Part shown: one piece after another, positions 9,115 through 29,520 of the stretch
Layout: every line of letters starts with the position of its first letter
Position numbering within the stretch: position 1 is the first letter of the stretch
DNA from: Hyalangium minutum
Lineage (GTDB): Bacteria; Myxococcota; Myxococcia; Myxococcales; Myxococcaceae
Direction: 5' to 3'
NCBI RefSeq assembly: GCF_000737315.1
Contig: NZ_JMCB01000019.1
Coordinates: 173,596 to 237,595 of the forward strand
DNA length: 64,000 bases
Notes under the pieces: generated by a model
What the model was told of the DNA's origin: nothing
Databases searched by the model: none
What the model saw: only the letters and a program-made list of their open reading frames with translations
Translations under genes and position numbers: made by a program

Positions 9115-10512
9115 ATGCACCTTCCCGCGTGGATCCGCGCCGCCGCCGTGGCGGGCTTCCTCAGTCACTCGGCCGCCTGGTCCCAGACGGCCCCCTCCGG
9201 CTTCGAGCTGGAGCGCCTGGAGCTCAACCTCGGTAAGGGCTCGCTCCTGTCCAGCCACGGCGAGCTGCTGGTCCCCACCGGCGTGAGCGCCGGGCTCGTC
9301 AGCCACTATGAGCACCTGCCGCTCGTGCTCCAGGACGGAGAGTCGCACCTGGAGCGGGTGCGGCACCGCGCCTCGCTCATGCTGGCGGCCAGCTACGGTG
9401 TGCTGCCGTGGCTCGAGGTGGGCGCGCAGATCCCCGCGGTGCTCTGGCAGCAAGGCGGGGATCCCAGCCTCCTGGGCCTGCCGCCGCTGACCGCGCGCGG
9501 GCTCGGGACGCCGATGCTCCAGGCCCGGCTGGGGCTGCTGTCGCGCCGCGAGGAGCACCCCGTGAACCTCGCGGTGGATCTCGCCGCGGGCCTACCTGTG
9601 GGGAGCGGCTCCGCGCTGGCGCGCGACGCGGGCCTGCGCTTCCGAGCCGGGGCCACGCTGGGGCTCGACTGGGGCTGGCTCCACCCCTCGCTCGAGGCGG
9701 GCGTGCTGCTGCGGCCGCCCAACCCCTTGTTCCGCAAAGGCTCGCCGCCCGTGGTCCCCGAGCTGCGCGTAAGCGCGGTGCTGGCCACGGCGAACCCGGG
9801 GCTTCGCGGCGAACTCGCCCTCCGGGGCGCCTTCGCGAGCGACGACAAGCAGCCCTCCCTGGAGCTGCTGGGCGGCGTGCGGTGGCCGCTGATGCCTCGG
9901 GTGGAGCTGCTCGCCCTGGGAGGCCCCGGCCTGGGCGCGGCGCCCGGAACGCCCTCCGCCCGCGTGCTGCTGGGGGTGAACTTCCTCATGGAGCCCCCGC
10001 CCGCATTGGAGCGGCTCACGGAGGCCATCCCTCACTTCACGCTGGAGCCGGAGGCCACCGCCGCACGCCGCGAGGTGCCCCGCCCGGCCGTGGCCCCCGT
10101 GCCCACGCGGGAGCTGCTCCCCACCGCAGTTCCGTTGGCCCACGCCACGCCCCTGCTGCAGGGCTCCGTGCTCTTCGAGCCGGGGCGGGCCGAGCTGCCC
10201 GCAGACCTCAGCCTGCCGCAGGCGGTGCTCGAGCTGCTGCGCTCGGAGCCCGGCAAGTCCATCGTCCTCCTCGAGGGGTACGCGGGCCAGGAGGACGCCG
10301 CGCAGGCCGATCGCCTCCTGCCCTTGAGGCGCGCGCAAGCGCTCCGGACCTACCTGGCGGGCCAGGGCGTGCCCTTGGAGCGCCTGCGGGTGCGAATCAC
10401 CAGCCCGGCCGCTTCCGCACACGCCCCCACGCCCGAGGACCTGGCGCGAGCGCGGCGGGTGGAGATGACCGTCCTGAGCGACCCCACCGCCGTCTCCGAG
10501 ACGACTCCCTGA
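9115..10512 (+). CDS. Outer-membrane beta-barrel plus OmpA-like C-terminal domain protein
   Basis: Signal peptide; GFELERLELN...barrel strands; C-terminal VLFEPGRAEL...LLEGYA...LPLRRAQALRTYL...RRVEM OmpA-like pattern. Confidence 0.8.
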   Translation: MHLPAWIRAAAVAGFLSHSAAWSQTAPSGFELERLELNLGKGSLLSSHGELLVPTGVSAGLVSHYEHLPLVLQDGESHLERVRHRASLMLAASYGVLPWLEVGAQIPAVLWQQGGDPSLLGLPPLTARGLGTPMLQARLGLLSRREEHPVNLAVDLAAGLPVGSGSALARDAGLRFRAGATLGLDWGWLHPSLEAGVLLRPPNPLFRKGSPPVVPELRVSAVLATANPGLRGELALRGAFASDDKQPSLELLGGVRWPLMPRVELLALGGPGLGAAPGTPSARVLLGVNFLMEPPPALERLTEAIPHFTLEPEATAARREVPRPAVAPVPTRELLPTAVPLAHATPLLQGSVLFEPGRAELPADLSLPQAVLELLRSEPGKSIVLLEGYAGQEDAAQADRLLPLRRAQALRTYLAGQGVPLERLRVRITSPAASAHAPTPEDLARARRVEMTVLSDPTAVSETTP

Positions 10513-10519
10513 GGCCGCC

Positions 10520-12205: not shown

Positions 12206-12208
12206 CCG

Positions 12209-12595
12209 ATGGGAATCCAAGTCGTCACGGGAGCCATGCTCCAGTGCAGCTTCGGCGTGGCGCCCTCCAGCCTGGTGGTGCTCCCGGCGAACAAGGTGAT
12301 GGCGACCACTCCGGCCGCCAACATCATGGACAACAAGCCGCTGGTGAACATCCCCCCGTTCGGGATGTGCCAATCCATGGCAAATCCGATGGTGGCCGCA
12401 GCCACGGCGGCGGCGCTGGGCGTGCTCACCCCAATGCCTTGCATTCCGGCGACGGCGGCGCCGTGGGCACCCGGCTGTCCCAAGGTGATGATCGGCAACA
12501 TGCCGGCCTTGGACAGCTCCTCCAAGTGCATGTGCAACTGGGGCGGCGTCATCCAGATCGTCAACCCCGGCCAGACGGCGGTGCAAGATGGCTGA
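12209..12595 (+). CDS. DUF4280 PAAR-like spike-tip protein (IglG-like)
   Basis: GAMLQCSFG, NIPPFGMC, PCIP, W-x-PG, KCMCNWGGVIQI: the DUF4280 Cys pattern. Confidence 0.9.
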   Translation: MGIQVVTGAMLQCSFGVAPSSLVVLPANKVMATTPAANIMDNKPLVNIPPFGMCQSMANPMVAAATAAALGVLTPMPCIPATAAPWAPGCPKVMIGNMPALDSSSKCMCNWGGVIQIVNPGQTAVQDG

Positions 12596-13715
12596 GTCTC
12601 TGCATTCGCTCGCGGCGCTGGAGCGCGCGTTGAGCACGGCCTCTGCTCCTGTCTCCTCGCTGACGCCCGAGCAGGTGGAGGCGCGGGTGGATCGGGTCAC
12701 CGCGCTGATGGCCCGGAGCGCCTACGACGAGGCGGCGCGCGCCTCCGAGGCATTGCTCACCGAGGGACTCCGGGATGTGCGGCTGGTAACGCCGTGCCTC
12801 TTCGGTGCCTTCCTGGAGCGCGGCCCGCGCGCTCTGCCCGGGATCTTCTCCGCCCTGCACCGAGTCCTCACGCGGAGCTGGGAGCAGCTTGGCCCCAGCG
12901 ACAAGAAGCCAGTCGTGGCGGACAGTGGGCTGCTCTGGCTGTTCAAGTCGCTTCACAAGCACCTGGAGTTCCATGGGCGGGCCCAGGACGACGTGTGGCG
13001 CAAGTGGTGCGAAAGCTGCGAGGCGTCTGAGATTCAGGAAGCGCTCCAGCGCGCAAGTGAGCTGTTCGAGGCTCTTGAACAGCTCCTGCCCAAAGGAGGG
13101 GGTACTACCCGGCTGCTCCAGTTGACCGGCTGGCTGACGGAGAACCGCGAGCTCTTCTCGGAGACTCCAGCCCGCCCTGCGCGGGCCCAGGCTGAGGAGT
13201 CCCCCAGGGCGGCGGCCATCTCTGAGCGCTGGGAGGAGGCGCCTTCCGCCGATCCAGAGGAGGAGGCGGAAGATGAGGAGGACGAAGAGCAAGAAGAAGC
13301 CACCGAGGAGCAGGCACTTGAAGCCGAGGATGACTCCGAAGAGGAGATCCTCTTCGAGCCCGTGGCGGTCCCGCAGCCCCGCTTGCCGCCACAGCCTGGT
13401 CTGGAGCCCTCTCCGGCGCTCGAGCAACTGCTGCACAAGCTGACCGCATTCGATCAGCTCGTAGAGCGTCAGGACTTCTCGCGGGCCAGCATGATTGCCA
13501 CGGACGTGCTCCATGTGATCGACCACTTCGATCCGCTCGTCTATCTGCCCTCGCTCTTCACACGCTTCCTCTCGGGCCTGAGCGCGCATGCGGGGAGCAT
13601 CGAGCCACGGATGCAGAGCCCTCGCTCCTTGGGTGAGCGTGCCCTCGAGCGGCTCTACCGGACGGACTTGCAGGCGTTCTTGAACTCCTCCTCCGGTGTG
13701 GAGGACGCGCCATGA
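12588..13715 (+). CDS. IglI-family / TssA(ImpA_N)-like T6SS protein
   Basis: RDVRLVTPCLFGAFLERGPRALPGIFSALHRVLTRSWEQLGP resembles the ImpA N-terminal KDLR...G...L...W..L.P pattern; acidic linker; overlaps both neighbours. Confidence 0.65.
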   Translation: MAESLHSLAALERALSTASAPVSSLTPEQVEARVDRVTALMARSAYDEAARASEALLTEGLRDVRLVTPCLFGAFLERGPRALPGIFSALHRVLTRSWEQLGPSDKKPVVADSGLLWLFKSLHKHLEFHGRAQDDVWRKWCESCEASEIQEALQRASELFEALEQLLPKGGGTTRLLQLTGWLTENRELFSETPARPARAQAEESPRAAAISERWEEAPSADPEEEAEDEEDEEQEEATEEQALEAEDDSEEEILFEPVAVPQPRLPPQPGLEPSPALEQLLHKLTAFDQLVERQDFSRASMIATDVLHVIDHFDPLVYLPSLFTRFLSGLSAHAGSIEPRMQSPRSLGERALERLYRTDLQAFLNSSSGVEDAP

Positions 13716-14632
13716 GAGACCTCTCATTCGAGCAACGGCTGCGCGAGCGCATCCGCGGGTTCGACATGCCCGCTCTGCTGGTGCTGCTGAAACACAAAAA
13801 GTATGCGCTGGAGCTGATCGAATACCGGAGCCACCGCACGCTCGTGCATCAGAGCCACCTGGTGCATGACATCCAGTTCAGCGACGAGTCACCCAGCCGG
13901 GTGATCATCACGGTGAACATCGGGCTGCTCAGCGTGCAGTCTCCTCTGCCCACCTTCCTGCATCAGACAATGAATCAGCTGGATCCGCTGGAGAGCGAGC
14001 GGATGGAACGTTTCCTGGGCTATTTCGACCACGAACTGCTCCGGGCGCGCTTCGCGGGGCTCTACCCTGAACGAAGCGCCTCGCTGCTTCCCGGCTGGGA
14101 GGAAGCGGCGCAGAACCGATTGAGCTTATTGAGCCTCACCAGCCCGAGCACGCTGCACTGGCTGTTCGCCCAAGTCTTCCCAGAGGCCGAAGTGTCCGTA
14201 CGGCGTGAGGTGCGCACTCAGGCCGTGCCAGCCCACGGCTCGCAGCTCGGTGTCACGGCATTGGGAGACTCCACGGCGTTGGGGGGCTTCGCCTCTGTGC
14301 CCACGGGCGGCATGGAAGTAACGGTCTTCTTCAATGAAAGTCATTGCGGAATAGGAACACCGTGGGCCATGGAAGCTCCGCTGCGCCTTTCCCATAGGCT
14401 CCTCCCTGTCTTCTCCCAGAGCTCGGCGCCACTCACCGCGTGGATGGTGTTGCGCGATCCGAGCGGTCCAGCCCGCCTCCAGCCAGACAACTACCTCGGC
14501 TATGTCCCGCTGGCGGGCACTGAGAACCTTCATCAACGTCTCTTGCTCTTCCGCGGCAACCTCGCGCATCCAACCCCAGACACGTCTAGCGGCCAGATAC
14601 CCAGCGTTTCGACCGAGCAGAGAGTGGCTTGA
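13712..14632 (+). CDS. tssG: TssG-like baseplate protein (IglJ position)
   Basis: ITVNIGLLSVQSPLP...FLGYFDHELL resembles the TssG V.FLGL.G..SPLP...DFLD.F.HRL pattern. Confidence 0.65.
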   Translation: MRDLSFEQRLRERIRGFDMPALLVLLKHKKYALELIEYRSHRTLVHQSHLVHDIQFSDESPSRVIITVNIGLLSVQSPLPTFLHQTMNQLDPLESERMERFLGYFDHELLRARFAGLYPERSASLLPGWEEAAQNRLSLLSLTSPSTLHWLFAQVFPEAEVSVRREVRTQAVPAHGSQLGVTALGDSTALGGFASVPTGGMEVTVFFNESHCGIGTPWAMEAPLRLSHRLLPVFSQSSAPLTAWMVLRDPSGPARLQPDNYLGYVPLAGTENLHQRLLLFRGNLAHPTPDTSSGQIPSVSTEQRVA

Positions 14633-14667
14633 CCCACTCCTGCCAAGTACCTCCAAGGGAGCCAACC

Positions 14668-15858
14668 ATGTCAAAAGTTCAATTCATCGGCTATCAACTC
14701 CAAACAGCGGCCAATGGAACATCGAACGCACTCAGCAAGCGCGTGAACTACCCAGGCCTCGCGAATGGCCGCGATGACATCAGGGCTCGATGCATGGTGC
14801 TGGCCGACGCCATCATCGCAGCGCGAATGCATCCAGCCATCGACACCAGCGCCAAGAAGATCTTTGCCGCACCAGAGTTCTTCTTCCGTGGCGGTTCGGC
14901 CGGCGTCTACAACATCGAAGATGTCTCGTACATCAACGAGTTCCTGGACACGTTCCTCGCCAAGCCGCACTACAAGAAGTGGACGTTCGTGCTTGGCACT
15001 GCACTCGCTGCGATGCCCGAGGAGAACTCCAAGACCGAGATTCTCAATATCTCCCTCGTGCGCAATGGCGGCGTGCGCGTCACCGGCAAAACGGATGCCA
15101 GCGAGCAGGACGCTCTCGCGCATGGCAGTAGCGACTCGCGGCTGATTTACAAGGAATACGTCTCCGCCATCGATTTCCTCGGGCCGAACTTCGGGCGAGG
15201 CGATTTGTTCCATGACGATCCGGCCCAGGGTGGACGCGCACATATCCGTGGCAAGCCCAAGACCCTCATGCCTACGTCGGGAGCGCGACCCACGGGCAAA
15301 TACATGCGCCACCGGAACAGTGCGAACGAGCACGGCCGGACTCGCACCTGGAAGCCCTCGGGGCACCTGCAGGGTGAGATCTATGGAGAGTTTCTACACG
15401 GACGAATCAAGACGCTCCCGGAGCTGAATCGGCGGCTCCGCCCCACCACGTACAAGACCAGCGAGCGCAGCAGGACGGGGCTCGGCGGCGGTATCGACTT
15501 CCAGATGAGTGGAATGCGCTTCGCGCTCGAGATCTGTCTGGATCACGCTCAGCAGCGCGCCGCAGAAGCTGTCCATTCGGACGTGGACGTGCACCTCGTC
15601 ACATCCTGCGGAATGACTCCCCGGTATTCGTGCTGCAAGAGCAGAGGCTTCCTGTTCCATGTCGACGGCATCACCGACGATGCAGCAAGGGTCTGGGCCT
15701 ACAAACGGACAAGCAGCGGCCACCTTCAGATGCGGCCGCAGACATCGTTGGACATGACCCACCCTTCACGCTGGCTCAACTCGACGACCGACGCGACGAA
15801 TCTCTTCGAGGCGGGCAAGGGCTCCGTCGTCATCTTCCGCGCCGACGCTCTTCCCTGA
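14668..15858 (+). CDS. Nitrilase / carbon-nitrogen hydrolase-fold protein, candidate effector
   Basis: KIFAAPEFFF (Glu), LIYKEYVS (Lys), FALEICLDHA (Cys); start after AGGGAG; visibly AT-richer codons. Confidence 0.6.
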   Translation: MSKVQFIGYQLQTAANGTSNALSKRVNYPGLANGRDDIRARCMVLADAIIAARMHPAIDTSAKKIFAAPEFFFRGGSAGVYNIEDVSYINEFLDTFLAKPHYKKWTFVLGTALAAMPEENSKTEILNISLVRNGGVRVTGKTDASEQDALAHGSSDSRLIYKEYVSAIDFLGPNFGRGDLFHDDPAQGGRAHIRGKPKTLMPTSGARPTGKYMRHRNSANEHGRTRTWKPSGHLQGEIYGEFLHGRIKTLPELNRRLRPTTYKTSERSRTGLGGGIDFQMSGMRFALEICLDHAQQRAAEAVHSDVDVHLVTSCGMTPRYSCCKSRGFLFHVDGITDDAARVWAYKRTSSGHLQMRPQTSLDMTHPSRWLNSTTDATNLFEAGKGSVVIFRADALP

Positions 15859-15882
15859 AGCTGGAAGCAGTGAGCAGGCCCC

Positions 15883-16006: not shown

Positions 16007-16540
16007 TTGCCCATCCAAGACAAACTTCCCACGTCCCGCATCACCCTCACCTACCGCACCACCATCAACGGGCAGGAGGAAGAGGTTGACCTCCCCTTCC
16101 GCATGCTCGTCCTCGGCGACCTCTCCCTCGGCTCGTCCAAGGACCGCAAGGTGGATCTCGACGAGCGCAAGCTGCGCTCCGTCAAGCCCGGCGGTCTGGA
16201 TGACCTGATGAAGGACATGGACATGTCCATCGAGTTCCAGGTCCCCGACAAGACCACCTCCAGCGGCGAGGGCACGATGAACGTGAAGCTGCCCATCGAG
16301 CGCATGAAGTCCTTCCATCCGGACGAGTTCGTCCAGCACGTGCCCAAGCTCAAGGCCCTGCTCATCCTCCGCAAGCTGCTGCTCGAGATGCAGGCCGACA
16401 TCGACAACCGCAAGGAGCTCTGGCGCACGCTCTCCGAGCTCTACGCCCACCCGGAGCAGATCCAGCAGCTGCTCGAGAGCGACGCGCTCAAGGGCTTCGA
16501 GAACCTCCGCCTGCCCCCCGGCGAAGCGGCCGGCAACTGA
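16007..16540 (+). CDS. tssB: T6SS contractile sheath small subunit TssB (VipA/IglA)
   Basis: SRITLTYRT...DLPFRMLVLGDLS...KSFHPDEFVQHVPKLKALL. Confidence 0.95.
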   Translation: MPIQDKLPTSRITLTYRTTINGQEEEVDLPFRMLVLGDLSLGSSKDRKVDLDERKLRSVKPGGLDDLMKDMDMSIEFQVPDKTTSSGEGTMNVKLPIERMKSFHPDEFVQHVPKLKALLILRKLLLEMQADIDNRKELWRTLSELYAHPEQIQQLLESDALKGFENLRLPPGEAAGN

Positions 16541-16582: not shown

Positions 16583-18076
16583 ATGGCTGAGAAAAACTAC
16601 CTGCAGGAACTCTTCAAGAGCCGCGGCCTGGGCACCCCGCCCACCACCGCCGAGCCCATGATTGGCACCGGCCTCGTCCCCACCTCGCGCCAGGAGAGCG
16701 AGATCTCCACCGACAGCCGGTTCATGTCCGCGCTCGCCGCGCTGCTCCACAACGTCAAGCCGCTCCAGGACGAGGACAGCCGGCCGCGCTTCGACAAGGG
16801 CCAGGTGATGGACGCCGTGGCCCGCCTGGATGAGCTCATCGAGGCCCAGGTCAACGAGATCCTCCACCACGAGACCTTCCAGCAGGCGGAGTCCACGTGG
16901 CGCGGTGTGGAGGACCTCGTCAATCACACCAACTTCCAGGCCAACATCAACATCGATCTGCTCGACGTGTCCAAGCAGGAGCTGGCTCAGGACTTCGAGA
17001 AGAACGCGAGCAGCATCTTCTCCAGCTCGCTCTTCAACAAGGTCTACACCCACGAGTACGACCAGTACGGCGGCCGGCCGTTCGGCACGATGATCGGGCT
17101 GTACGAGTTCACCGCGTCCCGGCCGGATCTGCAGTGGCTCGAGCGCATGAGCTGGGTGGCCAACGCGGCGCACTGCCCCTTCGTGGCCTCGGCCAGCTAC
17201 AAGTTCTTCGACTGCGAGAGCGTGGAGCAGCTCGAGTCGCTCAAGAGCCTGGACGGAGTGCTCAACCACCCGCGCTACGGCAAGTGGGCGGAGCTGCGCG
17301 AGAGCGAGTCGGCCGCGTACATCAGCCTGGCGCTCCCGCGCTACGTGGTGCGGCTGCCGTACAACCCCGTCACCAACCCGTGCGAGGTGCTCAACTTCAC
17401 CGAGGAGGCCCACGGCGACTCCAAGAAGTACCTCTGGGGCAATGCCGCCATCCTCTTCGGCCGCAACCTGGCCAGCGCCTTCGAGGTGTCCGGCTGGTGC
17501 CAGTCCATCCGCGGCCCCAAGGGCGGCGGCCGCATCCAGGGCCTGCCGGTGGACACCTTCACCCTGCGCGGTCAGCAGGAGATGCAGATGCCGGTGGAGA
17601 TGTGCATCCCGGACTTCCGCGAGTACGAGTTCGTCCGCCACGGCTTCATGCCGCTCGTGTACCGGAAGAACGAGGCCGAGGCGACGTTCTTCAGCACCCC
17701 GTCCATCAAGCGCGCCAAGCGCTACAAGGATCCGAAGGACTCGGAGAACGCCCAGCTCGTCACCAACATGGCGTACACGTTCTCCATCACCCGGCTCGCG
17801 CACTACATCAAGAGCATCATGCGCGACAACATCGGCAGCTCCGCCGATGAGGTCTACGTCCACCAGCAGATCAGCAACTGGCTGATGGACTACGTGACCG
17901 CGGTGAGCAACCCGGATGACCTCACGCTGCGGCGCTTCCCGTTCAAGTCCGCTCAGGTGCTCGTGGCCAAGCGCCCGGGTGAGATCGGCTGGTACGACTG
18001 CAAGGTGTCGGTCCTGCCGCACATCCAGTTCGAGGGCCTCAACGTCGAGCTGCAGCTCGAGTCGCGGCTCGGCTAG
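16583..18076 (+). CDS. tssC: T6SS contractile sheath large subunit TssC (VipB/IglB)
   Basis: QVNEILHHETFQQAESTWRG, EYDQYGGRPFG, AAHCPF, LALPRY, YLWGNAA, GWCQSIRGPKGGG, VLPHIQFEG. Confidence 0.97.
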   Translation: MAEKNYLQELFKSRGLGTPPTTAEPMIGTGLVPTSRQESEISTDSRFMSALAALLHNVKPLQDEDSRPRFDKGQVMDAVARLDELIEAQVNEILHHETFQQAESTWRGVEDLVNHTNFQANINIDLLDVSKQELAQDFEKNASSIFSSSLFNKVYTHEYDQYGGRPFGTMIGLYEFTASRPDLQWLERMSWVANAAHCPFVASASYKFFDCESVEQLESLKSLDGVLNHPRYGKWAELRESESAAYISLALPRYVVRLPYNPVTNPCEVLNFTEEAHGDSKKYLWGNAAILFGRNLASAFEVSGWCQSIRGPKGGGRIQGLPVDTFTLRGQQEMQMPVEMCIPDFREYEFVRHGFMPLVYRKNEAEATFFSTPSIKRAKRYKDPKDSENAQLVTNMAYTFSITRLAHYIKSIMRDNIGSSADEVYVHQQISNWLMDYVTAVSNPDDLTLRRFPFKSAQVLVAKRPGEIGWYDCKVSVLPHIQFEGLNVELQLESRLG

Positions 18077-18730: not shown

Positions 18731-19987
18731 ATGGATCCCCACAAGATCGCCCGCGTCCGCTGGCAGGCGGGGCAGATGCTCCTGCCCGAACACTTCCGCG
18801 CCCAGGACGAAGTCCTCTCCGCCGAGACGCTGCTCTCAGCGGAGCTCACCGGCCTGCCTCCCGTGGGCATCGGTGGGCTCGAACTCAACCGGGCCCAGCT
18901 GGCCGAGGGCACCTTCTCCCTCGGCTCGCTGACAGCCCTCATGCCGGGTGGCCAGCTTGTGCAGGTGCCCGGCAACGCCACCGTAGCGCCCATCTCGCTG
19001 GAGGAGACGGGCCGCTCGCGGCTCACGCTCTACCTCCACCTGATGCACGAGACCCGCGGCGCCGAGGGAATTCCCCTGTACGCGAAGGATCCTCCCGCGC
19101 TCCACCGGGCGCTCCACATCCTCCAGCTCTCCGCCGAGCAGGCCCTGGATGGGGCGATCAGCTCGCTGCCGCTGGCCGAGCTCCAGAAGGATGAGCTGGG
19201 GCGGTGGGAGCTGTCGCGGGAGCAGCTTCCTCCCCTGCTGCGCGCCAGCCCCCACCCGTTCCTGGATGGGCTGTTCTCCTGCCTGGACGAGCTGCTGGAG
19301 CAGGCGCACGGGCAGCTGCGCACGGCCATCCGTGACCACTACGTGCGCGGCGACCGGCTCTCCAATGCCCGGCGTGCCCTGTGCGAGGTGCGCCGCGCCC
19401 AGGGCCTGCGCGCGGACATGCGCCATGGCCTCCACCCCTCCACCTACCACCTCTTCTCGATGCTCCGCGAGCTGTACCTGCAGATGTGCTGCTACCTGGA
19501 GTGCGAGCCGGCGGAGGAGCTGCCCGCCTACGAGCACGACGCACCGGGCCCGGGCCTGTGGCAGTGGATGAAGCTGCTCGCGGGTGGCCTCCGCCCGAGC
19601 CAGGCAAACCGCCGCACGTACCAGCCCCTCGACTGCCGCGAGGGACGCTTCGTGATCTCGCCCTTGCCCCAGGAGGAGCCCGCGCCGAACGACTTCTACC
19701 TGCTGATCCGGCGTCACGAGCGCGACAAGCCTCGCGCTTTGGAGGGCGTGAAGATCGCCAGCCCCCTGCGCCTGCCCCTCGTGCGGCGACAGGCCCTCAA
19801 GGGCCTCACCTTCCGCCACGTGCCGTACCCCTCGTTCCCGCACGCGTTCGACTCGGACATCGACTGGTACCAGCTCACGACCGAGGGCGAGGAGTGGCAG
19901 GCCGTGCTGCGCGAGGGCGGGCTCTCCCTCCCCGTGACGCCGCCGCTGGAGGGAGCCCAGGTGTTCCTCTTCTGGAGGAGGACGTGA
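18731..19987 (+). CDS. tssK: TssK-like baseplate connector (IglD-like)
   Basis: RVRWQAGQMLLPEHFRAQD matches the TssK W.EG..L.PQHFQQQD pattern; position after the tube gene as iglD. Confidence 0.8.
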   Translation: MDPHKIARVRWQAGQMLLPEHFRAQDEVLSAETLLSAELTGLPPVGIGGLELNRAQLAEGTFSLGSLTALMPGGQLVQVPGNATVAPISLEETGRSRLTLYLHLMHETRGAEGIPLYAKDPPALHRALHILQLSAEQALDGAISSLPLAELQKDELGRWELSREQLPPLLRASPHPFLDGLFSCLDELLEQAHGQLRTAIRDHYVRGDRLSNARRALCEVRRAQGLRADMRHGLHPSTYHLFSMLRELYLQMCCYLECEPAEELPAYEHDAPGPGLWQWMKLLAGGLRPSQANRRTYQPLDCREGRFVISPLPQEEPAPNDFYLLIRRHERDKPRALEGVKIASPLRLPLVRRQALKGLTFRHVPYPSFPHAFDSDIDWYQLTTEGEEWQAVLREGGLSLPVTPPLEGAQVFLFWRRT

Positions 19988-19988: not shown

Positions 19989-20369
19989 ATGCCACGCCGG
20001 CCCTTTCTCGACAGGTTCTCCAGCCGCGGCGCCTCTGCGCGGGAGCCGCTGGGCCCCGTTCTGCGCAACCTCGAGGCGGTGCTCAACACCCGCGAGGGCT
20101 ACGGCTTCTTCCAGCAGGGCTTCGGGCTCGGGGACTACACCGGGGACCGCGGCGGCAAGGAGCTGGTGCCGTTCCTCACGGAGGAGCTGCAGCGCCAGGT
20201 GGCGCAGTACGAGCCCCGGCTGCGCGACGTGGAGGTGACGCTGCGTGGCCAGGACGCCGCCCTGTGCCTGCACTTCGAGGTGACGGGCCTGCTGAGCGGC
20301 GAGGCCCTGCGGCTGGGGCTGATCTTCGACACCGTGAGCAGCCGGGTGCGGCTGGAGAGGAAGGACTGA
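19989..20369 (+). CDS. tssE: TssE / gp25-like baseplate protein
   Basis: VLRNLEAVLNTR...FGLGD...VAQYEPRLRDVEV. Confidence 0.85.
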   Translation: MPRRPFLDRFSSRGASAREPLGPVLRNLEAVLNTREGYGFFQQGFGLGDYTGDRGGKELVPFLTEELQRQVAQYEPRLRDVEVTLRGQDAALCLHFEVTGLLSGEALRLGLIFDTVSSRVRLERKD

Positions 20370-20370
20370 C

Positions 20371-22644: not shown

Positions 22645-22683
22645 TGTGACGCAGTTCACACGCTTCCTATGGGGGCCCTCACA
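22645..22683. promoter_or_regulatory. Tandem CRP/FNR-type boxes upstream of tssF
   Basis: Perfect TGTGA-CGCAGT-TCACA (22645) and TATGG-GGGCCC-TCACA (22668), 23 bp apart. Confidence 0.7.
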
Positions 22684-22760
22684 GCCCCTTCGGTGAAGAA
22701 CGCTCAGAGTACGCGGCATCCGGGACGCCCACCGCCCCGGGTGAACGGATGGGATTTGCC

Positions 22761-24407
22761 ATGGCTGAAACGAATCAGCTCTATCAGGACTACCTCGCGG
22801 AGCTGGCGGCGCTCGAGCGCTTCCGCCAGGGCTTCCGCCACACCTACCCCGGCGTTCCCCTGGAGCAGGAGGACCCGGATGTGCGCCGGCTGGTGGAGGC
22901 CCTGGCCTTCTTCTCCGTGCAGACGCGGCACGCCACGCTGCGCAACCTCCGCTCCACGTGGCTGCGATTGTTCTCCAGCTTCTTCCACTGCCTGCTGGAG
23001 CCACTGCCTGCCACGGGCCTGGTGCAGGCGGCTCCCACGGAGAAGATGGTGGAGGCGGCAGTGCTGCCCCGAGGCACCGAGCTGAGCCTGCGGCCCGTGG
23101 GCGGCGAGGCGGGCTCCTTCCGCCTCGAGCGGGACCTGCGGGTGCTGCCCATCTTCCTGGAGGAGACGCAGGTGCTGAGCCTGGCGGATGGCGGCCACCG
23201 CCTCATCCTCCGCTTCGCCGCGGCCTTCCCTCGGAGGGATCCGGTGGAGGTGCTCAGCCTCCACGTGCGCCACCTGGAGGAGTACGGCAGTTCCCTGGCG
23301 GTGTACCACGCGCTCCGCAAGCATCTGCAGCAGGTGCGCGTGGTGTATGACGCGAAGGCGGATGAGCGCTCCGCGGGGCAGCTATGCGAGCACTCCTTCG
23401 GGCCGACGCCGTTCGCGCCCGATGACGCGAGCCTCTACGCCAACCCCCTGCAGCGCGCGCGCTCCTTCTTCCAGCTCCCGGAGCAGGGGCTCTTCCTGCA
23501 CATCCGGGTGGCGCCCACGCGGCAGGCCTGGAACCGCTTCAGCCTGTGCCTGGACTTGAAGAAGGAGTGGTCCGTGGGCCGCTCGCGCCACCCGGACTTC
23601 CTGCGCCCCTTCGTCGCGCCCGTCGTCAACCTCAAGGCCGCGCCCGCACAACCCATCACCCTGGATGGCACCCGCACCGAGCACCCGCTGTTGGGGCTGC
23701 GCAACGGCCATGGCTTCCGTCTGCACTCGGTGACGGGCGTCTACGTGCAGGGCTCCCGAGGCCGCGAGCCCATGCGTCCCGCCCACGTGCCTGGGCCCGG
23801 CCCCTCCTACGAACTGGACGAGCAGCTGGCCGCGGATGGCAACCCCTTGCACCAGCTGCTGGTGCAGATGCCGGAGGCCTTCCTCGAGCCGCGCAAGCTG
23901 CACGTGGACGCGCTCTGGTACCAGCCCCACTTCGCCACCGAGGCGATGGGCCGCCTCGAGGCCTCGACGCCCAGCCTCCACGTGGAGGGACTGCGGTGGC
24001 GCGTGCTGGGGGACGTGCAGCCGCCTCGCGAGAGCCCCCTGCGCCAGGACGTGCCCGCGCTGACGCGGCTGCTCTCGTGGAAGGTCCGCCCCACCCTGGA
24101 GCGGGACGAGCTGGCCGCCCTCCTGTCCTATCTGGGCACGTTCCAGGAGAGCGCCTTCGGCCCCATCCTCCCGCTGTTGCGCGCGCTGAGGTGCTCCGTG
24201 CTGCCGGATGGCGCGCTGCGCGGCACGGGGCTGCGGCACGTGTACGAGGCGCGGCTCGCGCCCTTCGACGCCAGCCAAGAGGCCCTCGTCGCCTGCTTCC
24301 TCGAGCAGGTGCTGGCCCTGCTGGACGCATGGAACGGCGAGGCCTCCGTGGAGCTGCGGCCCTCGGTGGACGGCGCTGGAGCTTTCAACCCCTGGGGAAC
24401 GCCATGA
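22761..24407 (+). CDS. tssF: TssF-like baseplate protein (IglH-like)
   Basis: YQDYLAELAALERFRQGF...EDPDVRRLVEALAFF; PFVAPVVNL. Confidence 0.85.
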   Translation: MAETNQLYQDYLAELAALERFRQGFRHTYPGVPLEQEDPDVRRLVEALAFFSVQTRHATLRNLRSTWLRLFSSFFHCLLEPLPATGLVQAAPTEKMVEAAVLPRGTELSLRPVGGEAGSFRLERDLRVLPIFLEETQVLSLADGGHRLILRFAAAFPRRDPVEVLSLHVRHLEEYGSSLAVYHALRKHLQQVRVVYDAKADERSAGQLCEHSFGPTPFAPDDASLYANPLQRARSFFQLPEQGLFLHIRVAPTRQAWNRFSLCLDLKKEWSVGRSRHPDFLRPFVAPVVNLKAAPAQPITLDGTRTEHPLLGLRNGHGFRLHSVTGVYVQGSRGREPMRPAHVPGPGPSYELDEQLAADGNPLHQLLVQMPEAFLEPRKLHVDALWYQPHFATEAMGRLEASTPSLHVEGLRWRVLGDVQPPRESPLRQDVPALTRLLSWKVRPTLERDELAALLSYLGTFQESAFGPILPLLRALRCSVLPDGALRGTGLRHVYEARLAPFDASQEALVACFLEQVLALLDAWNGEASVELRPSVDGAGAFNPWGTP

Positions 24408-25045
24408 ACCTGGAACATTGGAAGATCGTCTTCGCGCAGTACCGGCAGACGCGCGCGCTGTTGGACCAATGGCTGCCGGCCGAGACCTCGCGAAGCGAGG
24501 AGCGCACCCAGGTCCTCGTAGGACGCGCGGGGCTGGCGCAGTTGCAGCAGCAGTTACTGGTGGCGCTGGACGGCCTGCGCTCGGGGCTGGGCAGCCACTA
24601 CCGCTCCGAGGAGGTGGACGACGCGCTGCGGCCCTTCATCTATCTGCTAGATGAGCGGGTGCTGCTGCGCCTGGCCGAGGCCGAGCAGTACGACTGGCCC
24701 CCGCTGCAGCGCCACCTCCGCGGCGAGGAGGGCGGTGGAGACCTGTTCTTCGAGCTGGCGGACCAGAAGCTGAACCAGCCAGGAGCCTCGCCGCTGGTGT
24801 TCGAGCTGCTGCACTTCTGCCTCACCGCGGGCTTCGGCGGCCGCTACCTGGGCAACACGGCGAAGCTGCGTGAGTACAAGCAGCGGCTGGGGGCCCGCAT
24901 CGTCACCCCCGAACCCGCGCCTGCCGCGCCTCCCGCAGCCACGAACGCGCGGCCCCTGCTCTACGAGTTCCCCGCCCGCTACTACGCCGGCGCCTGCCTC
25001 TGCTTCCTGGGGCTGCAGGGCCTGCTGTGGTGGCTCTCCAACTGA
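24404..25045 (+). CDS. tssL: DotU/TssL membrane protein
   Basis: PFIYLLDERVL...LQRHLRGEEGGGDLFFE...LHFCLTAGFGGRY; C-terminal TM helix; ATGA overlap with tssF. Confidence 0.9.
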   Translation: MNLEHWKIVFAQYRQTRALLDQWLPAETSRSEERTQVLVGRAGLAQLQQQLLVALDGLRSGLGSHYRSEEVDDALRPFIYLLDERVLLRLAEAEQYDWPPLQRHLRGEEGGGDLFFELADQKLNQPGASPLVFELLHFCLTAGFGGRYLGNTAKLREYKQRLGARIVTPEPAPAAPPAATNARPLLYEFPARYYAGACLCFLGLQGLLWWLSN

Positions 25046-25054
25046 GGCGCCGCC

Positions 25055-25381
25055 ATGACTGCATCCCTTGCGAGAACAGGCAGTGAGCGCGCCTCCGTCC
25101 CGGCGGCCCCCGCGCTGCTGGAGCGCCTGGAGCGGCTCATCGACACGGAGCTGGGCCCCCTGCGAGCAGGCGTCGAGCCGCTGCTGGTGGACCTGCGCCA
25201 GGGCCTGGCAGCGCTCTTCCCGGGACCTGGAGGACAGCAGCTCTCGCCCCAGCAGCAGCAAGAGCAGCGCACCCGGCTCGACCAGGTGCTGGACACACTC
25301 GAAGACATTCTGGAGGCGCTGCAGCGCACCGCACGTGCGCAGCGCCGCACGGGCCCCACGGTGGGCCGGAGAGAGAGCTGA
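25055..25381 (+). CDS. Small helical hypothetical protein between tssL and tssM
   Basis: 108 aa with Leu/Glu heptads; 9 nt after tssL and 3 nt before tssM. Confidence 0.6.
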   Translation: MTASLARTGSERASVPAAPALLERLERLIDTELGPLRAGVEPLLVDLRQGLAALFPGPGGQQLSPQQQQEQRTRLDQVLDTLEDILEALQRTARAQRRTGPTVGRRES

Positions 25382-25384
25382 ATC

Positions 25385-28300
25385 ATGGAAAAGCTTCGCG
25401 AACTCGGGTCTCACGTGAGCCCCTACCAGGGCTGGCTGTTCCTCGCGCTGGGCGTGCTGCTCCTGGTGGCCGCCGTGGTGGCGCTCGCGGTGTGGATGCG
25501 CCGGCGGCGGCAGCGGGGCGCCACCTCCCTGGGGGCTCCGCCTCCCATGCCGGCCCAGCGGCTGCGGAAGATCCGCCAGGACTTCCTCAAGGCGCTGCCG
25601 TGGCTGCAGCGCGCCGCCGTGAGAGATCTACCGTGCGCGGTGGTGCTCGGCCCGGCGGGCAGCGGCAAGTCGAAGCTCATCGCCCTGGACGTGGACTGGC
25701 AGCGGCAGTCGCGCCAGTTCCTCCCCAGCCACACGAGCGACTCGCTGCTGAAGCTCTACCTTGGGCCCGACTCGGTGGTGCAGGAATTGTCGGCGCCGCT
25801 GACCGAGGACGACACGCCGCAGGCCCGCCGGTCGCTGCGCAAGCTGTGGAAGGACGCCTTTGGCCAGGGCCAGCATGCGCTCGCGGTCCTCGCGCTGGAC
25901 GTGCGCTGGCTGGCGGAGACCCCGCCCGACGAGGTGCGGCGCACAGCGCAGTTGCTGCGCGGCAAGCTCAACCTGCTGGCCGAGGTACGCAGACTCCCGG
26001 TGGAGACGCGCCTGTGCCTGACGCACATGGACACGCTGGAGGGCTTCGAGGACTTCGCCGAGCTGCTCCGCACCCACCATGTACCGCTCTCCTTCGCGCT
26101 GCCGCCTCGAGGCGAGGAGGGCCAGGTGGCCTCCCTCCTCCAGGCCCAGGAGCAGTACCTGGCGCTGGGGCTGACCTCGCTGCCGGTGGAATCCTTCGAA
26201 CGGCTGGAGCGCTTCTACTCCCAGGGCCACCGCCCCTTCGAGGCCCTGGCCCGCTTCACCACCGCGCTGCTCGAGGGTGGGACGCTGGCCTTCGTTCCCA
26301 AGCTGTCCCGGGTGTACCTCTCCTCGCCGTCGGCCCGCGCCTCGGGCGTGCTCTCCGTGCCCTCCGAGGCGCATGACGCCCAGACGCTGCGTCAGCGCTA
26401 CCTGCGCACGCACCTGAAGCGCGGCGCGATGCTGGCCACGGCCTGCAGCCTGCCCATGCTGGCCGCCTACGCGCACTTCTCCTGGCGGTTGTCGCAGGCC
26501 CAGGAGAATGTGGGGCGCTTCGAGAGCACGGTCCAGCGCATGCGCGACCAGGGCCAGGAGGTGTCTGGCAGCGTGGTGCAGGATCAGGTGCTCGCCGCGC
26601 GCCAGGCCATGGACGTGATGTGGCGGGCCACCGGCTACTGGCCGCTGCTGCCTTACAGCTTCTCCCAGGCCCGCGAGAACCTGACCAAGCGGCTGACCCA
26701 GGGCATCCGCGAGGCCCACCTGCGTCCCGCCCTCGAGCACTGCCAGAAGCAGCCGGACACGTGCCGCCCCGAGCAGGTCGTCTTCCTGCTGGCCGCCCTG
26801 CATGCCTCGAGCAGTGAGCCGCTCGGTCAGTTCGTCCTCTCCAGCCTGCGCAACCGGAGTGCGTGGAGCGTCTCCGGCAAGGAGGCACAGGAGACGGCCT
26901 CCACCACCGAGGCGCCCAACCTCGAGTCCACGCGCTCGTGGCTCACCGCCATCCATCTGGTGGAGTCCCTGGTGGGGCCCTACGTCACCCTCAGCGACAA
27001 GCCCTGGCAGGCCCCCACCACGCCAGAAGCGGACTGGGCGCGCTGGCCCTTCCGCGAGGCCTTCACGCTGGAGGGCCAGCTGGCTCCCTGGCAGGCCCAC
27101 TTCAAGCGGCTGGAGGACTTCCTGCAAGCGCAGGCGGTGGAGCCCTGGGAGCTGGACCGGATGAACAAGGAGCTGGAGGCGCTGCAGGAGGAGCGGCTGC
27201 AGCTCCAGGCGTGGCTGGAGGACAGCGCCATCTTTGCCGCCCTGCCGCGCGCGCTCGACCTGATCAAGGCCTCCGAGGCCCGCGTGGACACCAGCCGCTT
27301 CAAGGGCCTGTCCTCCACGCTCCAGTCCGTGGAGTGGATGAACAAACACCGCGAGGTGCTCGCCTCCCTGCTGCACATGGAGGAGGAGGCCTATACGGGC
27401 CTCAAGGCAGTGCAGAAGATGAGCGTGGCCGAGCTGCTCGTGCGTGGCGGAGTGTGGCAGCCGGGCCCCTCCAGCAAGGGCCCTCTCCAGCTGACCATCA
27501 CCCAGGGCCCCCTCGAGTTCCACCCGGCGGATAACTCGCGCCAGATTCACCGGGCCATCCTCCGCTACTACGAGCGTACGGGCCGCCTGCCCTTCGCCTC
27601 GGCGCGCGGTGAGGGGGAGGGCTCCTCTCCGTCCACCACCAGCCTGCCCGAGGAGCGGCTGAAGTTCGACACCCGCATCCGCCCGCTGGTGGACGAGTTC
27701 ACCCAGTTGCTCAAGAGCGCCGACCTGCCCGCGGAGGAGATCTCCCAGCGCCAGGAGCACGTCCGCCGCCAGGTGGATCTGTTCTCGATCCGGTACCGCC
27801 AGCGGCTCTACCAGCGCGTGAACGCCTACCGCCTCGACGCGCTCACCCCCGCCCTGCTCACCGAGGAGCTGTCGCGCCTCACCCAGCCCTCCTCGGAGCT
27901 GGTGGACATGCTGCGCGACGTGGCCAAGGGAGCCTCCCTCGAGCCGCTCGAGGGCCCCTACTACGAGTCCCTGCGCAACTCGGTGGCCACCTTCAAGCCC
28001 ATCGTGCAGGTGATGAAGCCCGACGAGAGCGGCAACTACGCTCTCCTCAATCCCTACCGGGCCCTGGTGGCGCAGCTGTCGGACGAGCTGCTGGCCGTCT
28101 CCCGCGGGGGAGCCCGGGCCGCATCCACCGCTCCGGCCTCCGGTGGCGAGGGAGGCAGCGCGGCCCGGCTCACGGAGATGCTCACACCCATGGGGCGCAT
28201 TGCCCTCTCGATGATGCTGGAGGCGGACGACTCGTATCTCCGCAAGGTGGATGCATGGCTGGACCAGCAGGGCTTCATCGGCGAGCTGCGTGAGCCCTTC

Positions 28301-29062
28301 CGGCAGCCGTTCCTGGCGGTGCGGAAGCTGGGGCAACAGGAGCTCGAGCAACTCCTGCAGGAGCAGTGGGAGACGGCCTCGGGCCGCATGCTGCACCCGT
28401 TGATGAGCCGGTACCCGTTCAACCCGCGGGCCACGCAAGAAGTGGAGCCGGGCGAGCTGGAGATCCTGCGCCGCCAGGATGGCGTGTTCTGGAGTTTCGT
28501 GAACCGGATCATCGCGCCCGTCAGCGAGGAGCGCGGCACAGACTGGGTGCTGCGAGGCGCCCTGCGGGATCGGCTCCGCCTGCCCGAGGAGCTGCTCCCC
28601 ACGCTCAGCCGGCTCTCGCGCCTGTCCCGCGCGCTCTGGGATGGGGAGGGCCGCGCACGTCCTCTGATGCTGCAGGTGATGCCGCTGCCGCTGCCACCCG
28701 CGCCCAAGGCGGACAGCTTCGTGACGCTGGGCTCGCTCAAGTGCGGCAGGACCGCGGCGCTGGCCTACAACCAGAGCCCTTCATGGCAGGCGTTCCCGGT
28801 CGACTGGTGGGATCAGCAGACCGCCTCGCTGGTGGTGGAGCTGCGCTCGCCCGAGCAGCAGGCCATCCAATACACCACGCTGCAGCAGCCGCGCTCGGCC
28901 TGGAGCTGCTTCCGCCTGCTCGAGGATTCGCTGCCCACGGGTGACCAGCAGCGGCTGTGGCGGATGCGGGGCCGCAGCTCGGAGACCGCGCAGCAGACGA
29001 TGGAGATCCGCTTCGGTCTCAAGGGAGAGCCCTGGACCCTTTTCCGTGAGGTGCAACCATGA
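25385..29062 (+). CDS. tssM: TssM/IcmF-like membrane complex protein (PdpB-like)
   Basis: N-terminal TM helix; Walker A VVLGPAGSGKSKLI; CLTHMDTLEGFEDF; second TM helix; C-terminal LMSRYPFNP and YNQSPSWQAFPVDW. Confidence 0.85.
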   Translation: MEKLRELGSHVSPYQGWLFLALGVLLLVAAVVALAVWMRRRRQRGATSLGAPPPMPAQRLRKIRQDFLKALPWLQRAAVRDLPCAVVLGPAGSGKSKLIALDVDWQRQSRQFLPSHTSDSLLKLYLGPDSVVQELSAPLTEDDTPQARRSLRKLWKDAFGQGQHALAVLALDVRWLAETPPDEVRRTAQLLRGKLNLLAEVRRLPVETRLCLTHMDTLEGFEDFAELLRTHHVPLSFALPPRGEEGQVASLLQAQEQYLALGLTSLPVESFERLERFYSQGHRPFEALARFTTALLEGGTLAFVPKLSRVYLSSPSARASGVLSVPSEAHDAQTLRQRYLRTHLKRGAMLATACSLPMLAAYAHFSWRLSQAQENVGRFESTVQRMRDQGQEVSGSVVQDQVLAARQAMDVMWRATGYWPLLPYSFSQARENLTKRLTQGIREAHLRPALEHCQKQPDTCRPEQVVFLLAALHASSSEPLGQFVLSSLRNRSAWSVSGKEAQETASTTEAPNLESTRSWLTAIHLVESLVGPYVTLSDKPWQAPTTPEADWARWPFREAFTLEGQLAPWQAHFKRLEDFLQAQAVEPWELDRMNKELEALQEERLQLQAWLEDSAIFAALPRALDLIKASEARVDTSRFKGLSSTLQSVEWMNKHREVLASLLHMEEEAYTGLKAVQKMSVAELLVRGGVWQPGPSSKGPLQLTITQGPLEFHPADNSRQIHRAILRYYERTGRLPFASARGEGEGSSPSTTSLPEERLKFDTRIRPLVDEFTQLLKSADLPAEEISQRQEHVRRQVDLFSIRYRQRLYQRVNAYRLDALTPALLTEELSRLTQPSSELVDMLRDVAKGASLEPLEGPYYESLRNSVATFKPIVQVMKPDESGNYALLNPYRALVAQLSDELLAVSRGGARAASTAPASGGEGGSAARLTEMLTPMGRIALSMMLEADDSYLRKVDAWLDQQGFIGELREPFRQPFLAVRKLGQQELEQLLQEQWETASGRMLHPLMSRYPFNPRATQEVEPGELEILRRQDGVFWSFVNRIIAPVSEERGTDWVLRGALRDRLRLPEELLPTLSRLSRLSRALWDGEGRARPLMLQVMPLPLPPAPKADSFVTLGSLKCGRTAALAYNQSPSWQAFPVDWWDQQTASLVVELRSPEQQAIQYTTLQQPRSAWSCFRLLEDSLPTGDQQRLWRMRGRSSETAQQTMEIRFGLKGEPWTLFREVQP

Positions 29063-29520
29063 AACGCCTGTTCCTGTTCTGCTCCACCCTGCTGCTGCCG
29101 CTCGTCGCCTGCCAACCGGCCACCCTGCAACTGAGCATCAAGGCTCCCTCGGGAACCAACCAGGGCCGGCCGCTCTACATGCTGGTGCGCAAGGTGGACC
29201 CGAAGCAGTACGCCACCGAGTCCTACGATGACGTCTCCGCCCGTGCCTTCCAGCCAGACGCGAGCGTCCTCCACAAGGAGATCATCTATCCGGGCACGCT
29301 GCGGCGCATCCCGGTGAAGATCCCCGAGGACTCTTCCCTGGCAGTGTCATTCCTCTTCACCGCTCCAGATGGGAACTGGCAGTCCTTCTTGAACATGCCC
29401 GTTCCCCAGGACCTGGATGTCGAGCTGCAGGAGAGCCGCATCCTGTCGGGAGGTTCTGCCGCGCCGCCCCCGGCTGAAGCGGCGGCCTCCCCCGCAGCTC
29501 CCACGCCGTCCAAGTCCTGA
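29059..29520 (+). CDS. tssJ: TssJ/IglE-like outer-membrane lipoprotein
   Basis: Lipobox PLVAC; LQLSIKAPSGTNQGRPLYMLV; ATGA overlap with tssM. Confidence 0.7.
   Translation: MKRLFLFCSTLLLPLVACQPATLQLSIKAPSGTNQGRPLYMLVRKVDPKQYATESYDDVSARAFQPDASVLHKEIIYPGTLRRIPVKIPEDSSLAVSFLFTAPDGNWQSFLNMPVPQDLDVELQESRILSGGSAAPPPAEAAASPAAPTPSKS

Follow-up and report, generated by a model that had tools for sequence, protein, structure and literature searches.

A probable type VI secretion system of the Francisella pathogenicity island lineage in the myxobacterium Hyalangium minutum

Background

Reviews from 2016 to August 2026 restrict T6SS-ii, the class of type VI secretion system (T6SS) that the Francisella pathogenicity island (FPI) encodes, to the genus Francisella. 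A 64-kb stretch of the Hyalangium minutum genome (contig NZ_JMCB01000019.1, about 68% GC; hereafter the window) raises the question of whether a machine of the same lineage is also encoded by a free-living soil predator. The original prediction on this DNA placed a T6SS-ii-lineage machine at positions 9115-29520, and we consider it likely that this locus encodes a complete, probably functional, contractile T6SS in the lineage that includes the FPI, although less diverged from canonical systems. The prediction of such a machine outside Francisella stands on the split seen in a TssC tree, the predicted IglC fold of the tube protein and the presence of PdpA, IglI, IglE and IglG equivalents. What does not stand is any notion of an FPI copy or of a system unique to this organism: the locus is best described as part of a widespread sister lineage of the FPI, bridging the FPI and the canonical T6SS.

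The locus and its relatives contradict the statement that T6SS-ii is found in Francisella only, and they set the FPI machine within a broad environmental lineage that uses unusual parts previously described in Francisella alone. An open-access full-text search returned no paper on a T6SS of the FPI type in any of the carrier taxa, myxobacteria included, in keeping with the earlier claim that no such locus was known to have been characterized in myxobacteria. The non-pathogenic and tractable carriers (myxobacteria, marine gammaproteobacteria) could provide a safe model for FPI-type architecture, and the locus also raises the question of what role a second, non-canonical T6SS plays in predatory myxobacteria.

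Results and discussion

Layout of the cluster

The cluster consists of 18 intact open reading frames (ORFs), all on the + strand and tightly coupled, as had been claimed, and its proposed limits are exact, i.e., 9115 is the ATG of the OmpA-like first gene (the longest ORF there begins with a GTG at 9085), and the stop of the iglE-like gene falls at 29520 (Table 1). In gene order the intergenic spacing is 7, 3, -8, -4, 35, 148, 42, 42, 39, 1, 1, 12, 122, -4, 9, 3 and -4 bp (negative values are overlaps), thus ranging from -8 to 148 bp, with overlaps of 4-8 bp in four gene pairs. No frameshift or internal stop interrupts any of the 18 ORFs, and 16 of them show a strong high-GC codon bias (GC content at third codon positions, GC3, 0.81-0.96); tssG and the ORF at 14668-15858 lie in a lower-GC stretch and fall under the 0.80 GC3 filter. 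The flanks are housekeeping or myxobacteria-specific genes. A further ORF at 22669-23085 (138 aa) was judged spurious, as it overlaps the start of tssF, has no family match and fails the codon-bias filter.

Family calls are based on Pfam and NCBIfam scans of the ORFs of the window. These recovered every family named beforehand (TssB, TssC, TssK, TssE, TssF, TssG, TssL, TssM, a lipoprotein and DUF4280), and the full gene list is longer by eight (the OmpA-like, ANL-like, IglI, 396-aa, tube, PdpA-like, short vgrG and 108-aa genes). The protein previously called a TssJ-like lipoprotein is a lipoprotein, though of the IglE_N family and without a match to TssJ. Neither the cluster nor the other confident ORFs of the 64 kb matched T6SS_HCP, a long VgrG, TssJ/SciN or ClpV, so that the reported absence of Hcp, full-length VgrG and ClpV holds.

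Placement of the sheath

The TssC tree (neighbour-joining with a simple distance correction, 35 sequences, 463 columns, 300 bootstraps, unrooted) contained 11 T6SS-i references from annotated plasmids, one of which was checked and found to have TssH, TssJ and TagH in its locus. All 300 bootstraps separated these 11 from a group made up of FPI IglB, Fangia, Vibrio sinus, the second Francisella system and the window clade; the window TssC, whose nesting among T6SS-i would have spoken for a canonical origin, was not found inside any sampled T6SS-i clade. Within the group, the FPI and the second Francisella system come together with 99.7% bootstrap support, the window clade alone has 60%, and the window TssC lies outside the Francisella/Fangia/Vibrio sinus crown group. 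IglB itself shares 38-43% identity with the window clade, against 27-35% with T6SS-i. An independent result points to the same taxa: Bröms et al. (2012, PMC3326028) located the nearest relatives of Francisella DotU in Stigmatella, Desulfonatronospira and Haliangium. A scan of viral contigs with the TssC alignment for T6SS-iii references gave none, and none was among the plasmid matches listed; PDB 9n4v, low in rank among the PDB matches, is a possible candidate.

A tube protein with a predicted IglC-like fold

The product of the gene following tssC had no match in Pfam, NCBIfam or, as a single sequence, among PDB sequences, its family profile found only chance antibody matches in the PDB, and its 238 homologues are all named 'hypothetical'. 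An AlphaFold (AF2) model built from 60 homologues (predicted local distance difference test, pLDDT, 86; predicted template-modelling score, pTM, 0.84) was compared with the PDB by Foldseek, and the sole significant match was F. tularensis IglC (2qwu_A, E 9.9e-6, template-modelling score, TM, 0.66, 203/207 columns). Hcp and pyocin tube proteins trail at E 0.1-0.6 and TM about 0.3 (best Hcp, E 0.12-0.24), so the model is closer to IglC than to Hcp. The protein is thus predicted, from its model, to be a functional Hcp equivalent with an IglC-like rather than an Hcp-like fold. The next gene encodes TssK, which aligned over its full length with IglD (P 99.8) in an hhalign comparison with FPI proteins that left out PdpD, PdpB, IglA and IglB. 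The gene order tssB-tssC-tube-tssK mirrors iglA-B-C-D, as had been proposed.

A spike divided between two proteins

No Pfam or NCBIfam family matched the 547-aa product of the gene after tssE, and single-sequence PDB searches with this protein, the tube and the short VgrG returned nothing useful. The profile of 13 of its orthologues, on the other hand, had a single match in the PDB, PdpA (6u9e_A, E 5.6e-6), and by hhalign the protein aligned to the 849-aa FPI PdpA of Vibrio sinus over 482 columns (P 95.6, E 1.2e-8). The family hidden Markov model (HMM) reached the Vibrio sinus PdpA at 9e-13 and a 663-aa protein of the second Francisella system at 2.6e-18. The best match of the adjoining short VgrG is the NCBI Francisella TssI model, and the top matches of its family HMM among FPI ORFs are 164-aa VgrGs (about 1e-4, in a small database). 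Because both parts form one 770-aa ORF in two Myxococcales metagenome-assembled genomes (MAGs; L020, 9090-11399, and L021, 13656-15965, distinct loci with 87% identical DNA), we interpret the PdpA-like/VgrG pair as a split VgrG. The spike is therefore not closer to canonical VgrG, with PdpA as the only PDB match of the hub and the Francisella model as the best match of the needle.

The putative spike tip, a DUF4280 protein with six cysteines, corresponds to IglG (hhalign P 98.3; family HMM 2.7e-16) but aligns to IglG residues 56-170 only and is without the N-terminal extension, a Francisella-specific feature that binds IglF (PMC5014421). Neither hhalign nor tblastn revealed a homologue of IglF, and no window protein matched the PdpD region of the FPI locus (L001) by tblastn.

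IglI as a probable divergent TssA

No canonical TssA is present in the locus. Its IglI-family protein is predicted to consist of an ImpA_N-like helical domain at the N terminus, a disordered, acidic linker and a second helical domain at the C terminus, and the family HMM of the window-type proteins reaches FPI IglI at 2e-20 (hhalign P 97.6). When 78 diverse IglI-family representatives were scanned singly, 20 matched the Pfam family ImpA_N (best 1.2e-7), and orthologues from Desulfonatronospira (5.9e-5) and Methylococcaceae (6.2e-4) matched it as well; FPI IglI itself gave no match. Against the PDB, the best match of the family profile was 6rju_A (E 1.5e-6), of which the aligned segment is an ImpA_N domain (7.5e-28), and the third was Burkholderia cenocepacia TssA (6hs5_A, 4.5e-3). 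The AlphaFold model of the window protein (pLDDT 74) contains two confident helical domains, with the TssA N-terminal domain 6hs5 as best PDB match, at an E of only 0.095. IglI is probably a divergent TssA carrying an ImpA_N domain, and a TssA-like role would fit the finding that F. novicida cannot assemble its sheath without IglI (PMC5481754). According to a 2026 review, T6SS-ii has no TssA, and in open-access full text no paper mentions both IglI and ImpA_N and none was found linking IglI with TssA.

Baseplate and membrane complex

The clear TssE of the original prediction was recovered by both a Pfam and a TIGRFAM model, scoring slightly under the cut-off of the latter (50.3 bits on TIGR03357, cut-off 53.2). 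Family matches of TssF cover its N-terminal two-thirds only and its TIGR03359 score is well under the curated cut-off; tssG is 25-38% identical across all related loci. TssG and TssM, like TssE, score at or close to the cut-offs. The window DotU matches FPI DotU (hhalign P 98.2; family HMM about 1e-17 to 1e-20), and TssM has an N-terminal transmembrane segment and a Walker A motif, GPAGSGKS, at residue 89. The IglE-type lipoprotein carries the lipobox LPLVAC and, in addition to its strong Pfam match, scores 41 bits on the NCBI equivalog NF041245 (1.9e-10; cut-off 75).

An extracellular contractile injection system (eCIS), or an array of the T6SS-iv kind, would not be anchored in the membrane, and T6SS-iv resembles the window in being a contractile machine without ClpV. 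However, the window encodes TssM, TssL, the lipoprotein, TssK and a sheath of two proteins, TssB and TssC, and genes for tail fibres, a tape measure or a single-chain sheath were not observed, leaving this explanation with a practically negligible probability.

We propose that the products would act together as follows. TssM, TssL/DotU and the IglE lipoprotein would form an envelope-spanning complex, which the OmpA-like protein may tie to peptidoglycan. TssE, TssF, TssG and TssK would make up a baseplate enclosing a spike composed of the PdpA-like hub, the short VgrG beta-helix and the DUF4280 tip, and from this baseplate the IglC-like tube and the TssB/TssC sheath would polymerise, assisted by IglI. 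Sheath contraction would then expel tube, spike and any attached cargo, possibly into prey bacteria, competitors or grazing eukaryotes. As the locus has no ClpV, the contracted sheath may, by analogy with Francisella, be recycled by a housekeeping unfoldase, e.g., ClpB.

Between the FPI and the canonical systems

With the FPI, the window shares the sheath grouping in the TssC tree, the tssB-tssC-tube-tssK gene order, a tube predicted to have the IglC fold, a spike of PdpA plus a very short VgrG under a DUF4280 tip, an IglI-family protein, an IglE-type lipoprotein in place of TssJ and the absence of ClpV from the locus. The two differ in that the window has a clear TssE (that of the FPI is still unidentified, PMC9600919), TssF, TssG and TssK proteins that standard models readily recognise, a TssM that keeps its Walker A motif, and additional OmpA-like and ANL-like genes at its 5' end, whereas its PdpA-like protein is shorter by about 240 N-terminal residues, its DUF4280 protein is without the IglG extension, no IglF or PdpD homologue was detected and its host is not an intracellular pathogen. 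Judged by sequence, the window would stand apart from a strictly defined FPI in its TssE, its recognisable baseplate and the lack of the IglG extension and of IglF, while a lineage-specific core appears common to both.

The second Francisella clusters, i.e., FTN_0038-0054 of F. novicida and T6SS I/II of Francisella sp. W12-1067 (PMC4230796), for which loci L007 and L023 stand here, occupy a position in the TssC tree between the FPI and the window clade. Their TssC is 44% and their DUF4280 protein 57-59% identical to the window, and they have the 663-aa PdpA-like protein mentioned above, an IglE-like lipoprotein (8.6e-10) and a short VgrG. Unlike the window, they are AT-rich, confined to Francisella and arranged in another gene order, and the parts of the loci compared yielded no homologue of TssE, TssG or IglI.

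With canonical T6SS-i (e.g., that of V. cholerae, or the one studied in M. xanthus, PDB 5urw), the window has homologous TssB, TssC, TssE, TssF, TssG, TssK, TssL and TssM, presumably the contractile mechanism, and an IglI whose N-terminal domain is probably related to the ImpA_N domain of TssA. It differs by having no Hcp-family tube, full-length VgrG, TssJ, ClpV or canonical TssA, and by a TssC on the other side of the fully supported split. T6SS-iii (Bacteroidota) is likewise contractile and also uses DUF4280 tips (PMC5014421), but by published description it has Hcp, VgrG, ClpV and TssN/O/P and no TssJ/L/M, whereas the window has TssL and TssM. As noted above, TssL, TssM, the lipoprotein and the two-protein sheath distinguish it from eCIS and T6SS-iv.

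The locus might instead be a divergent T6SS-i subtype in which ClpV, TssJ and TssA were lost and Hcp and VgrG reshaped; its likeness to the FPI would then be due only to deep ancestry common to all T6SSs, or to parallel loss. Several results weigh against our placement and in some measure favour this one. TssB, TssC, TssK, TssE and TssF match canonical TIGRFAMs (the first three above cut-offs), and TssE, TssF, TssG and TssK score on the canonical Pfam/TIGRFAM models, while FPI proteins are reported not to score on canonical TIGRFAM models (PMC4793230). VipB and IglB resemble the window TssC to much the same degree (37% and 35% identity; 347 and 354 bits against the PDB), so that raw identity is no discriminator. 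The tree, besides being unrooted, was built without T6SS-iii, T6SS-iv, M. xanthus, P. aeruginosa H1 and several T6SS-i subtypes, and the window clade could branch from a T6SS-i lineage outside this sample. Neither hhalign nor HMM comparison linked the tube to IglC at the sequence level; window-clade HMMs and hhalign gave no FPI counterpart for TssE or TssG (IglJ in the latter case); TssF is weakly related to IglH (hhalign P 5-7); the hhalign and HMM links of VgrG and IglE to Francisella are weak; and the window IglI alone matches ImpA_N at E 0.08, at the expected position. On the other hand, five parts are common to the window and the FPI and not to T6SS-i (IglI, IglE_N, PdpA, the short VgrG and the IglC fold), bootstrap support for the grouping with IglB is 100%, IglB is clearly closer to the window clade than to T6SS-i, and the DotU result concurs (PMC3326028). 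We therefore regard a divergent T6SS-i subtype as unlikely and keep the placement in the lineage of the FPI.

Relatives and persistence of the lineage

A genome scan with IglB as query (one genome per species) uncovered three groups of loci. The first comprises FPI clusters in Francisella, Fangia, Facilibium and Vibrio sinus, and the second the other Francisella cluster type. The third includes Corallococcus, Myxococcaceae, Myxococcales and Polyangia MAGs, Paraglaciecola, Kangiella, Aliikangiella, Methylococcaceae and Pseudoalteromonadaceae, and its loci carry, by tblastn, the set seen in the window (tssB, tssC, tube, tssK, in part tssE, pdpA-like, short vgrG, tssF, dotU, tssG, iglI and DUF4280) in mostly the same order. 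The core order is also the same in Desulfonatronospira thiodismutans and a Chlamydiales MAG. The closest genome found was that of Archangium violaceum (CP069396), nearly collinear with the window and with a 93% identical TssC; this match and the myxobacteria-specific SitA6/SitI6 genes in the flanks support a myxobacterial origin of the DNA.

The best 120 of 1019 TssC matches are all at least 55% identical to the window protein, and the matches listed include Archangium, Cystobacter, Stigmatella, Hyalangium, Corallococcus, Myxococcus stipitatus, Pyxidicoccus, Desulfobotulus and Desulfonatronospira, as well as MAGs assigned to Elusimicrobia, Polyangia and Chlamydiales. When IglI was used in an exhaustive profile search, E <= 1e-3 gave 611 representative clusters (50% identity level) and E <= 1e-30 gave 300. 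The NCBI IglI_fam model names a Myxococcus fulvus protein, i.e., curators have partly captured these families, Pfam IglE_N among them. Myxobacteria have at least two paralogous versions of the system: in the Corallococcus loci L009-L011 TssC is about 51% and the tube about 25% identical to the window, with other Corallococcus proteins at 64% and 60%.

Could the cluster be an inactive relic, or a machine with a use other than secretion? It contains no recognisable toxin/immunity pair and encodes no dedicated recycling ATPase. Yet Francisella works without ClpV (PMC5481754), the ORFs are intact with host-like GC3 in 16 genes and preserved translational coupling, and the cluster is kept across genera and phyla at 30-93% protein identity; the conservation of the gene set in largely the same order across taxa argues for selection on function. 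We consider a relic or a non-secretory machine quite improbable. A recent horizontal gain from a Francisella-like donor is still less credible, indeed very improbable. FPI-type clusters do move between lineages, as the one in Vibrio sinus attests, but GC content and codon usage of the window fit the host, its TssC is just 35% identical to IglB, and the system is widespread, with its paralogous types within Myxococcota.

The Vibrio sinus S4M6 chromosome (L005, 363-14098) holds a genuine FPI-type cluster outside Francisella, as do Fangia (L004) and Facilibium (L006). The Vibrio sinus cluster contains PdpA (849 aa), PdpB, IglE, a 164-aa VgrG, IglA-D and IglJ, and its IglB is 65% identical to the F. 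tularensis query. In three metagenomic TssC relatives (P0091, P0097 and P0117; 826-856 aa), TssB (PF05591) and TssC (PF05943, PF18945) domains occur in one protein, and the sheath subunits thus appear fused in part of the clade's relatives. In addition, NZ_CP010448.1 (L025, L026), a 101-kb PLSDB 'plasmid' of F. tularensis SCHU S4, combines genes of the chromosome with a partial FPI (pdpD, iglABC(D)) and is probably a mis-assigned chromosome fragment.

We lean slightly towards a broader reading, in which the window represents a large and ancient T6SS lineage, undescribed as a system in searchable papers, that spans Myxococcota, Desulfobacterota and several gammaproteobacterial orders, with further members in MAGs assigned to Chlamydiales and Elusimicrobia, and of which the FPI would be one fast-evolving offshoot. 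IglI would then be the missing TssA, PdpA plus VgrG a split VgrG, IglH would correspond to TssF and IglJ to TssG, and the loss of TssE would be specific to Francisella. A 2022 structural paper could not identify the canonical counterparts of IglI, PdpA, IglH and IglJ by BLAST (PMC9600919), and the sequences described here would serve as intermediates that link these proteins to canonical parts. If this broader reading is true, a lineage in which canonical and 'Francisella-only' parts stand together is a key for reading the FPI.

Table 1 Genes of the T6SS cluster and selected flanking genes in the window (coordinates in window positions; E-values or scores of the supporting matches)
Feature	Position	Strand	Support
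SitA6-family polymorphic toxin lipoprotein	5931-6638	+	TIGR02269 7e-57
SitI6 double-CXXCG immunity protein	6663-7376	+	TIGR02264 1.6e-89
OmpA-family outer-membrane/peptidoglycan-binding protein, TraB-like N-terminal part	9115..10512	+	OmpA domain residues 363-437, 1.7e-5; weak TraB NF033763 4.8e-15
Divergent adenylate-forming (ANL) superfamily member, 561 aa	10520..12205	+	Pfam AMP-binding 5e-13, N-terminal part only
DUF4280 PAAR-like spike tip, IglG family, 128 aa	12209..12595	+	PF14107 5.5e-38; NF041248 IglG 1.3e-17
IglI-family protein, putative divergent TssA-like assembly factor	12588..13715	+	NF041244 IglI_fam 1e-77, 262 bits (cut-off 100)
TssG baseplate subunit	13712..14632	+	PF06996 1.5e-5, 24.9 bits (cut-off 24.6), weak
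396-aa protein, lineage-variable slot between tssG and tssB	14668..15858	+	No family match
TssB/IglA small sheath subunit	16007..16540	+	PF05591 2.4e-39; TIGR03358 1.5e-42; TTG start as listed
TssC/IglB large sheath subunit	16583..18076	+	TIGR03355 6e-146, 487 bits
IglC-like inner tube protein (predicted), 190 aa	18119..18691	+	Predicted fold; iglC position after tssC
TssK/IglD baseplate-to-membrane-complex adaptor	18731..19987	+	TIGR03353 5.4e-97
TssE, gp25-like sheath initiator	19989..20369	+	PF04965 (GPW_gp25) 1e-11; TIGR03357 1.7e-13
PdpA-like spike hub, 547 aa	20371..22014	+	Profile and hhalign to PdpA; equivalent to N-terminal part of split VgrG
Short VgrG beta-helix needle, 199 aa	22027..22626	+	NF041249 T6SS_TssI_Fran 3.1e-7 (below cut-off); DUF2345 2e-4
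TssF baseplate subunit	22749..24407	+	PF05947 3e-26; TIGR03359 3.5e-29
TssL/DotU with C-terminal hydrophobic anchor	24404..25045	+	PF09850 7e-20
108-aa small protein between dotU and tssM	25055..25381	+	Same position, 45-54% in Corallococcus and Myxococcaceae MAG
TssM/PdpB-like inner-membrane subunit	25385..29062	+	Weak IcmF_helical, IcmF_C, IcmF-related_N; TIGR03348 9e-21
IglE-type outer-membrane lipoprotein (TssJ equivalent)	29059..29520	+	PF22361 IglE_N 4.8e-33, 114 bits (cut-off 26)
Ig-repeat (choice-of-anchor D) surface lipoprotein, 1781 aa	29658..35003	+	NF012200 3.8e-87, 10 repeats; ASH/HYDIN-like Ig domains; C-terminal hydrophobic tail

Accessory genes, candidate cargo and flanking genes

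The OmpA-like gene keeps its place at the edge of the cluster in Corallococcus (about 60%), Archangium (66%) and a near relative (L040), and its product is a probable cell-wall anchor of the machine. The ANL-like enzyme, an unusual companion of a T6SS, is also encoded in Corallococcus, Archangium, Methylococcaceae and Myxococcales MAG loci, where it adjoins the PAAR-like gene; its family profile matched adenylation domains of nonribosomal peptide synthetases and acyl-CoA synthetases in the PDB, mostly over residues ~65-170. The 108-aa protein had no family match.

The variable gene between tssG and tssB is a candidate for cargo or an effector, and the ANL-like gene a weaker one. The 396-aa product of this slot had no match in Pfam, NCBIfam, PADLOC or the PDB and no homologue among the 24 loci from the genome scan; it is 88% identical in the near relative L040, and no immunity-like gene follows it in the window. 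Its motifs PEFFF and EICLDH may recall nitrilase-superfamily enzymes, a lead that no tool supported. In A. violaceum (L039) the same slot holds an unrelated 805-aa protein (12192-14609), and an HNH nuclease (142 aa) together with a DUF4265 gene is inserted between the OmpA-like and ANL-like genes (6711-7624). The nuclease and DUF4265 would fit a putative antibacterial toxin/immunity pair, and both this insert and the 805-aa protein are candidates for strain-specific cargo.

The 1781-aa lipoprotein encoded directly downstream of iglE is possibly associated with the system, and similar genes adjoin iglE in Corallococcus (L010) and a MAG (L016). About 2 kb upstream of the cluster, a lower-GC stretch contains the SitA6 and SitI6 genes, presumably a toxin/immunity pair delivered by myxobacterial outer-membrane exchange. 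Further upstream, an 871-aa ORF on the opposite strand (2849-5464, -; GC3 0.76) has a choice-of-anchor A/ice-binding-like adhesive domain and a disintegrin-like segment.

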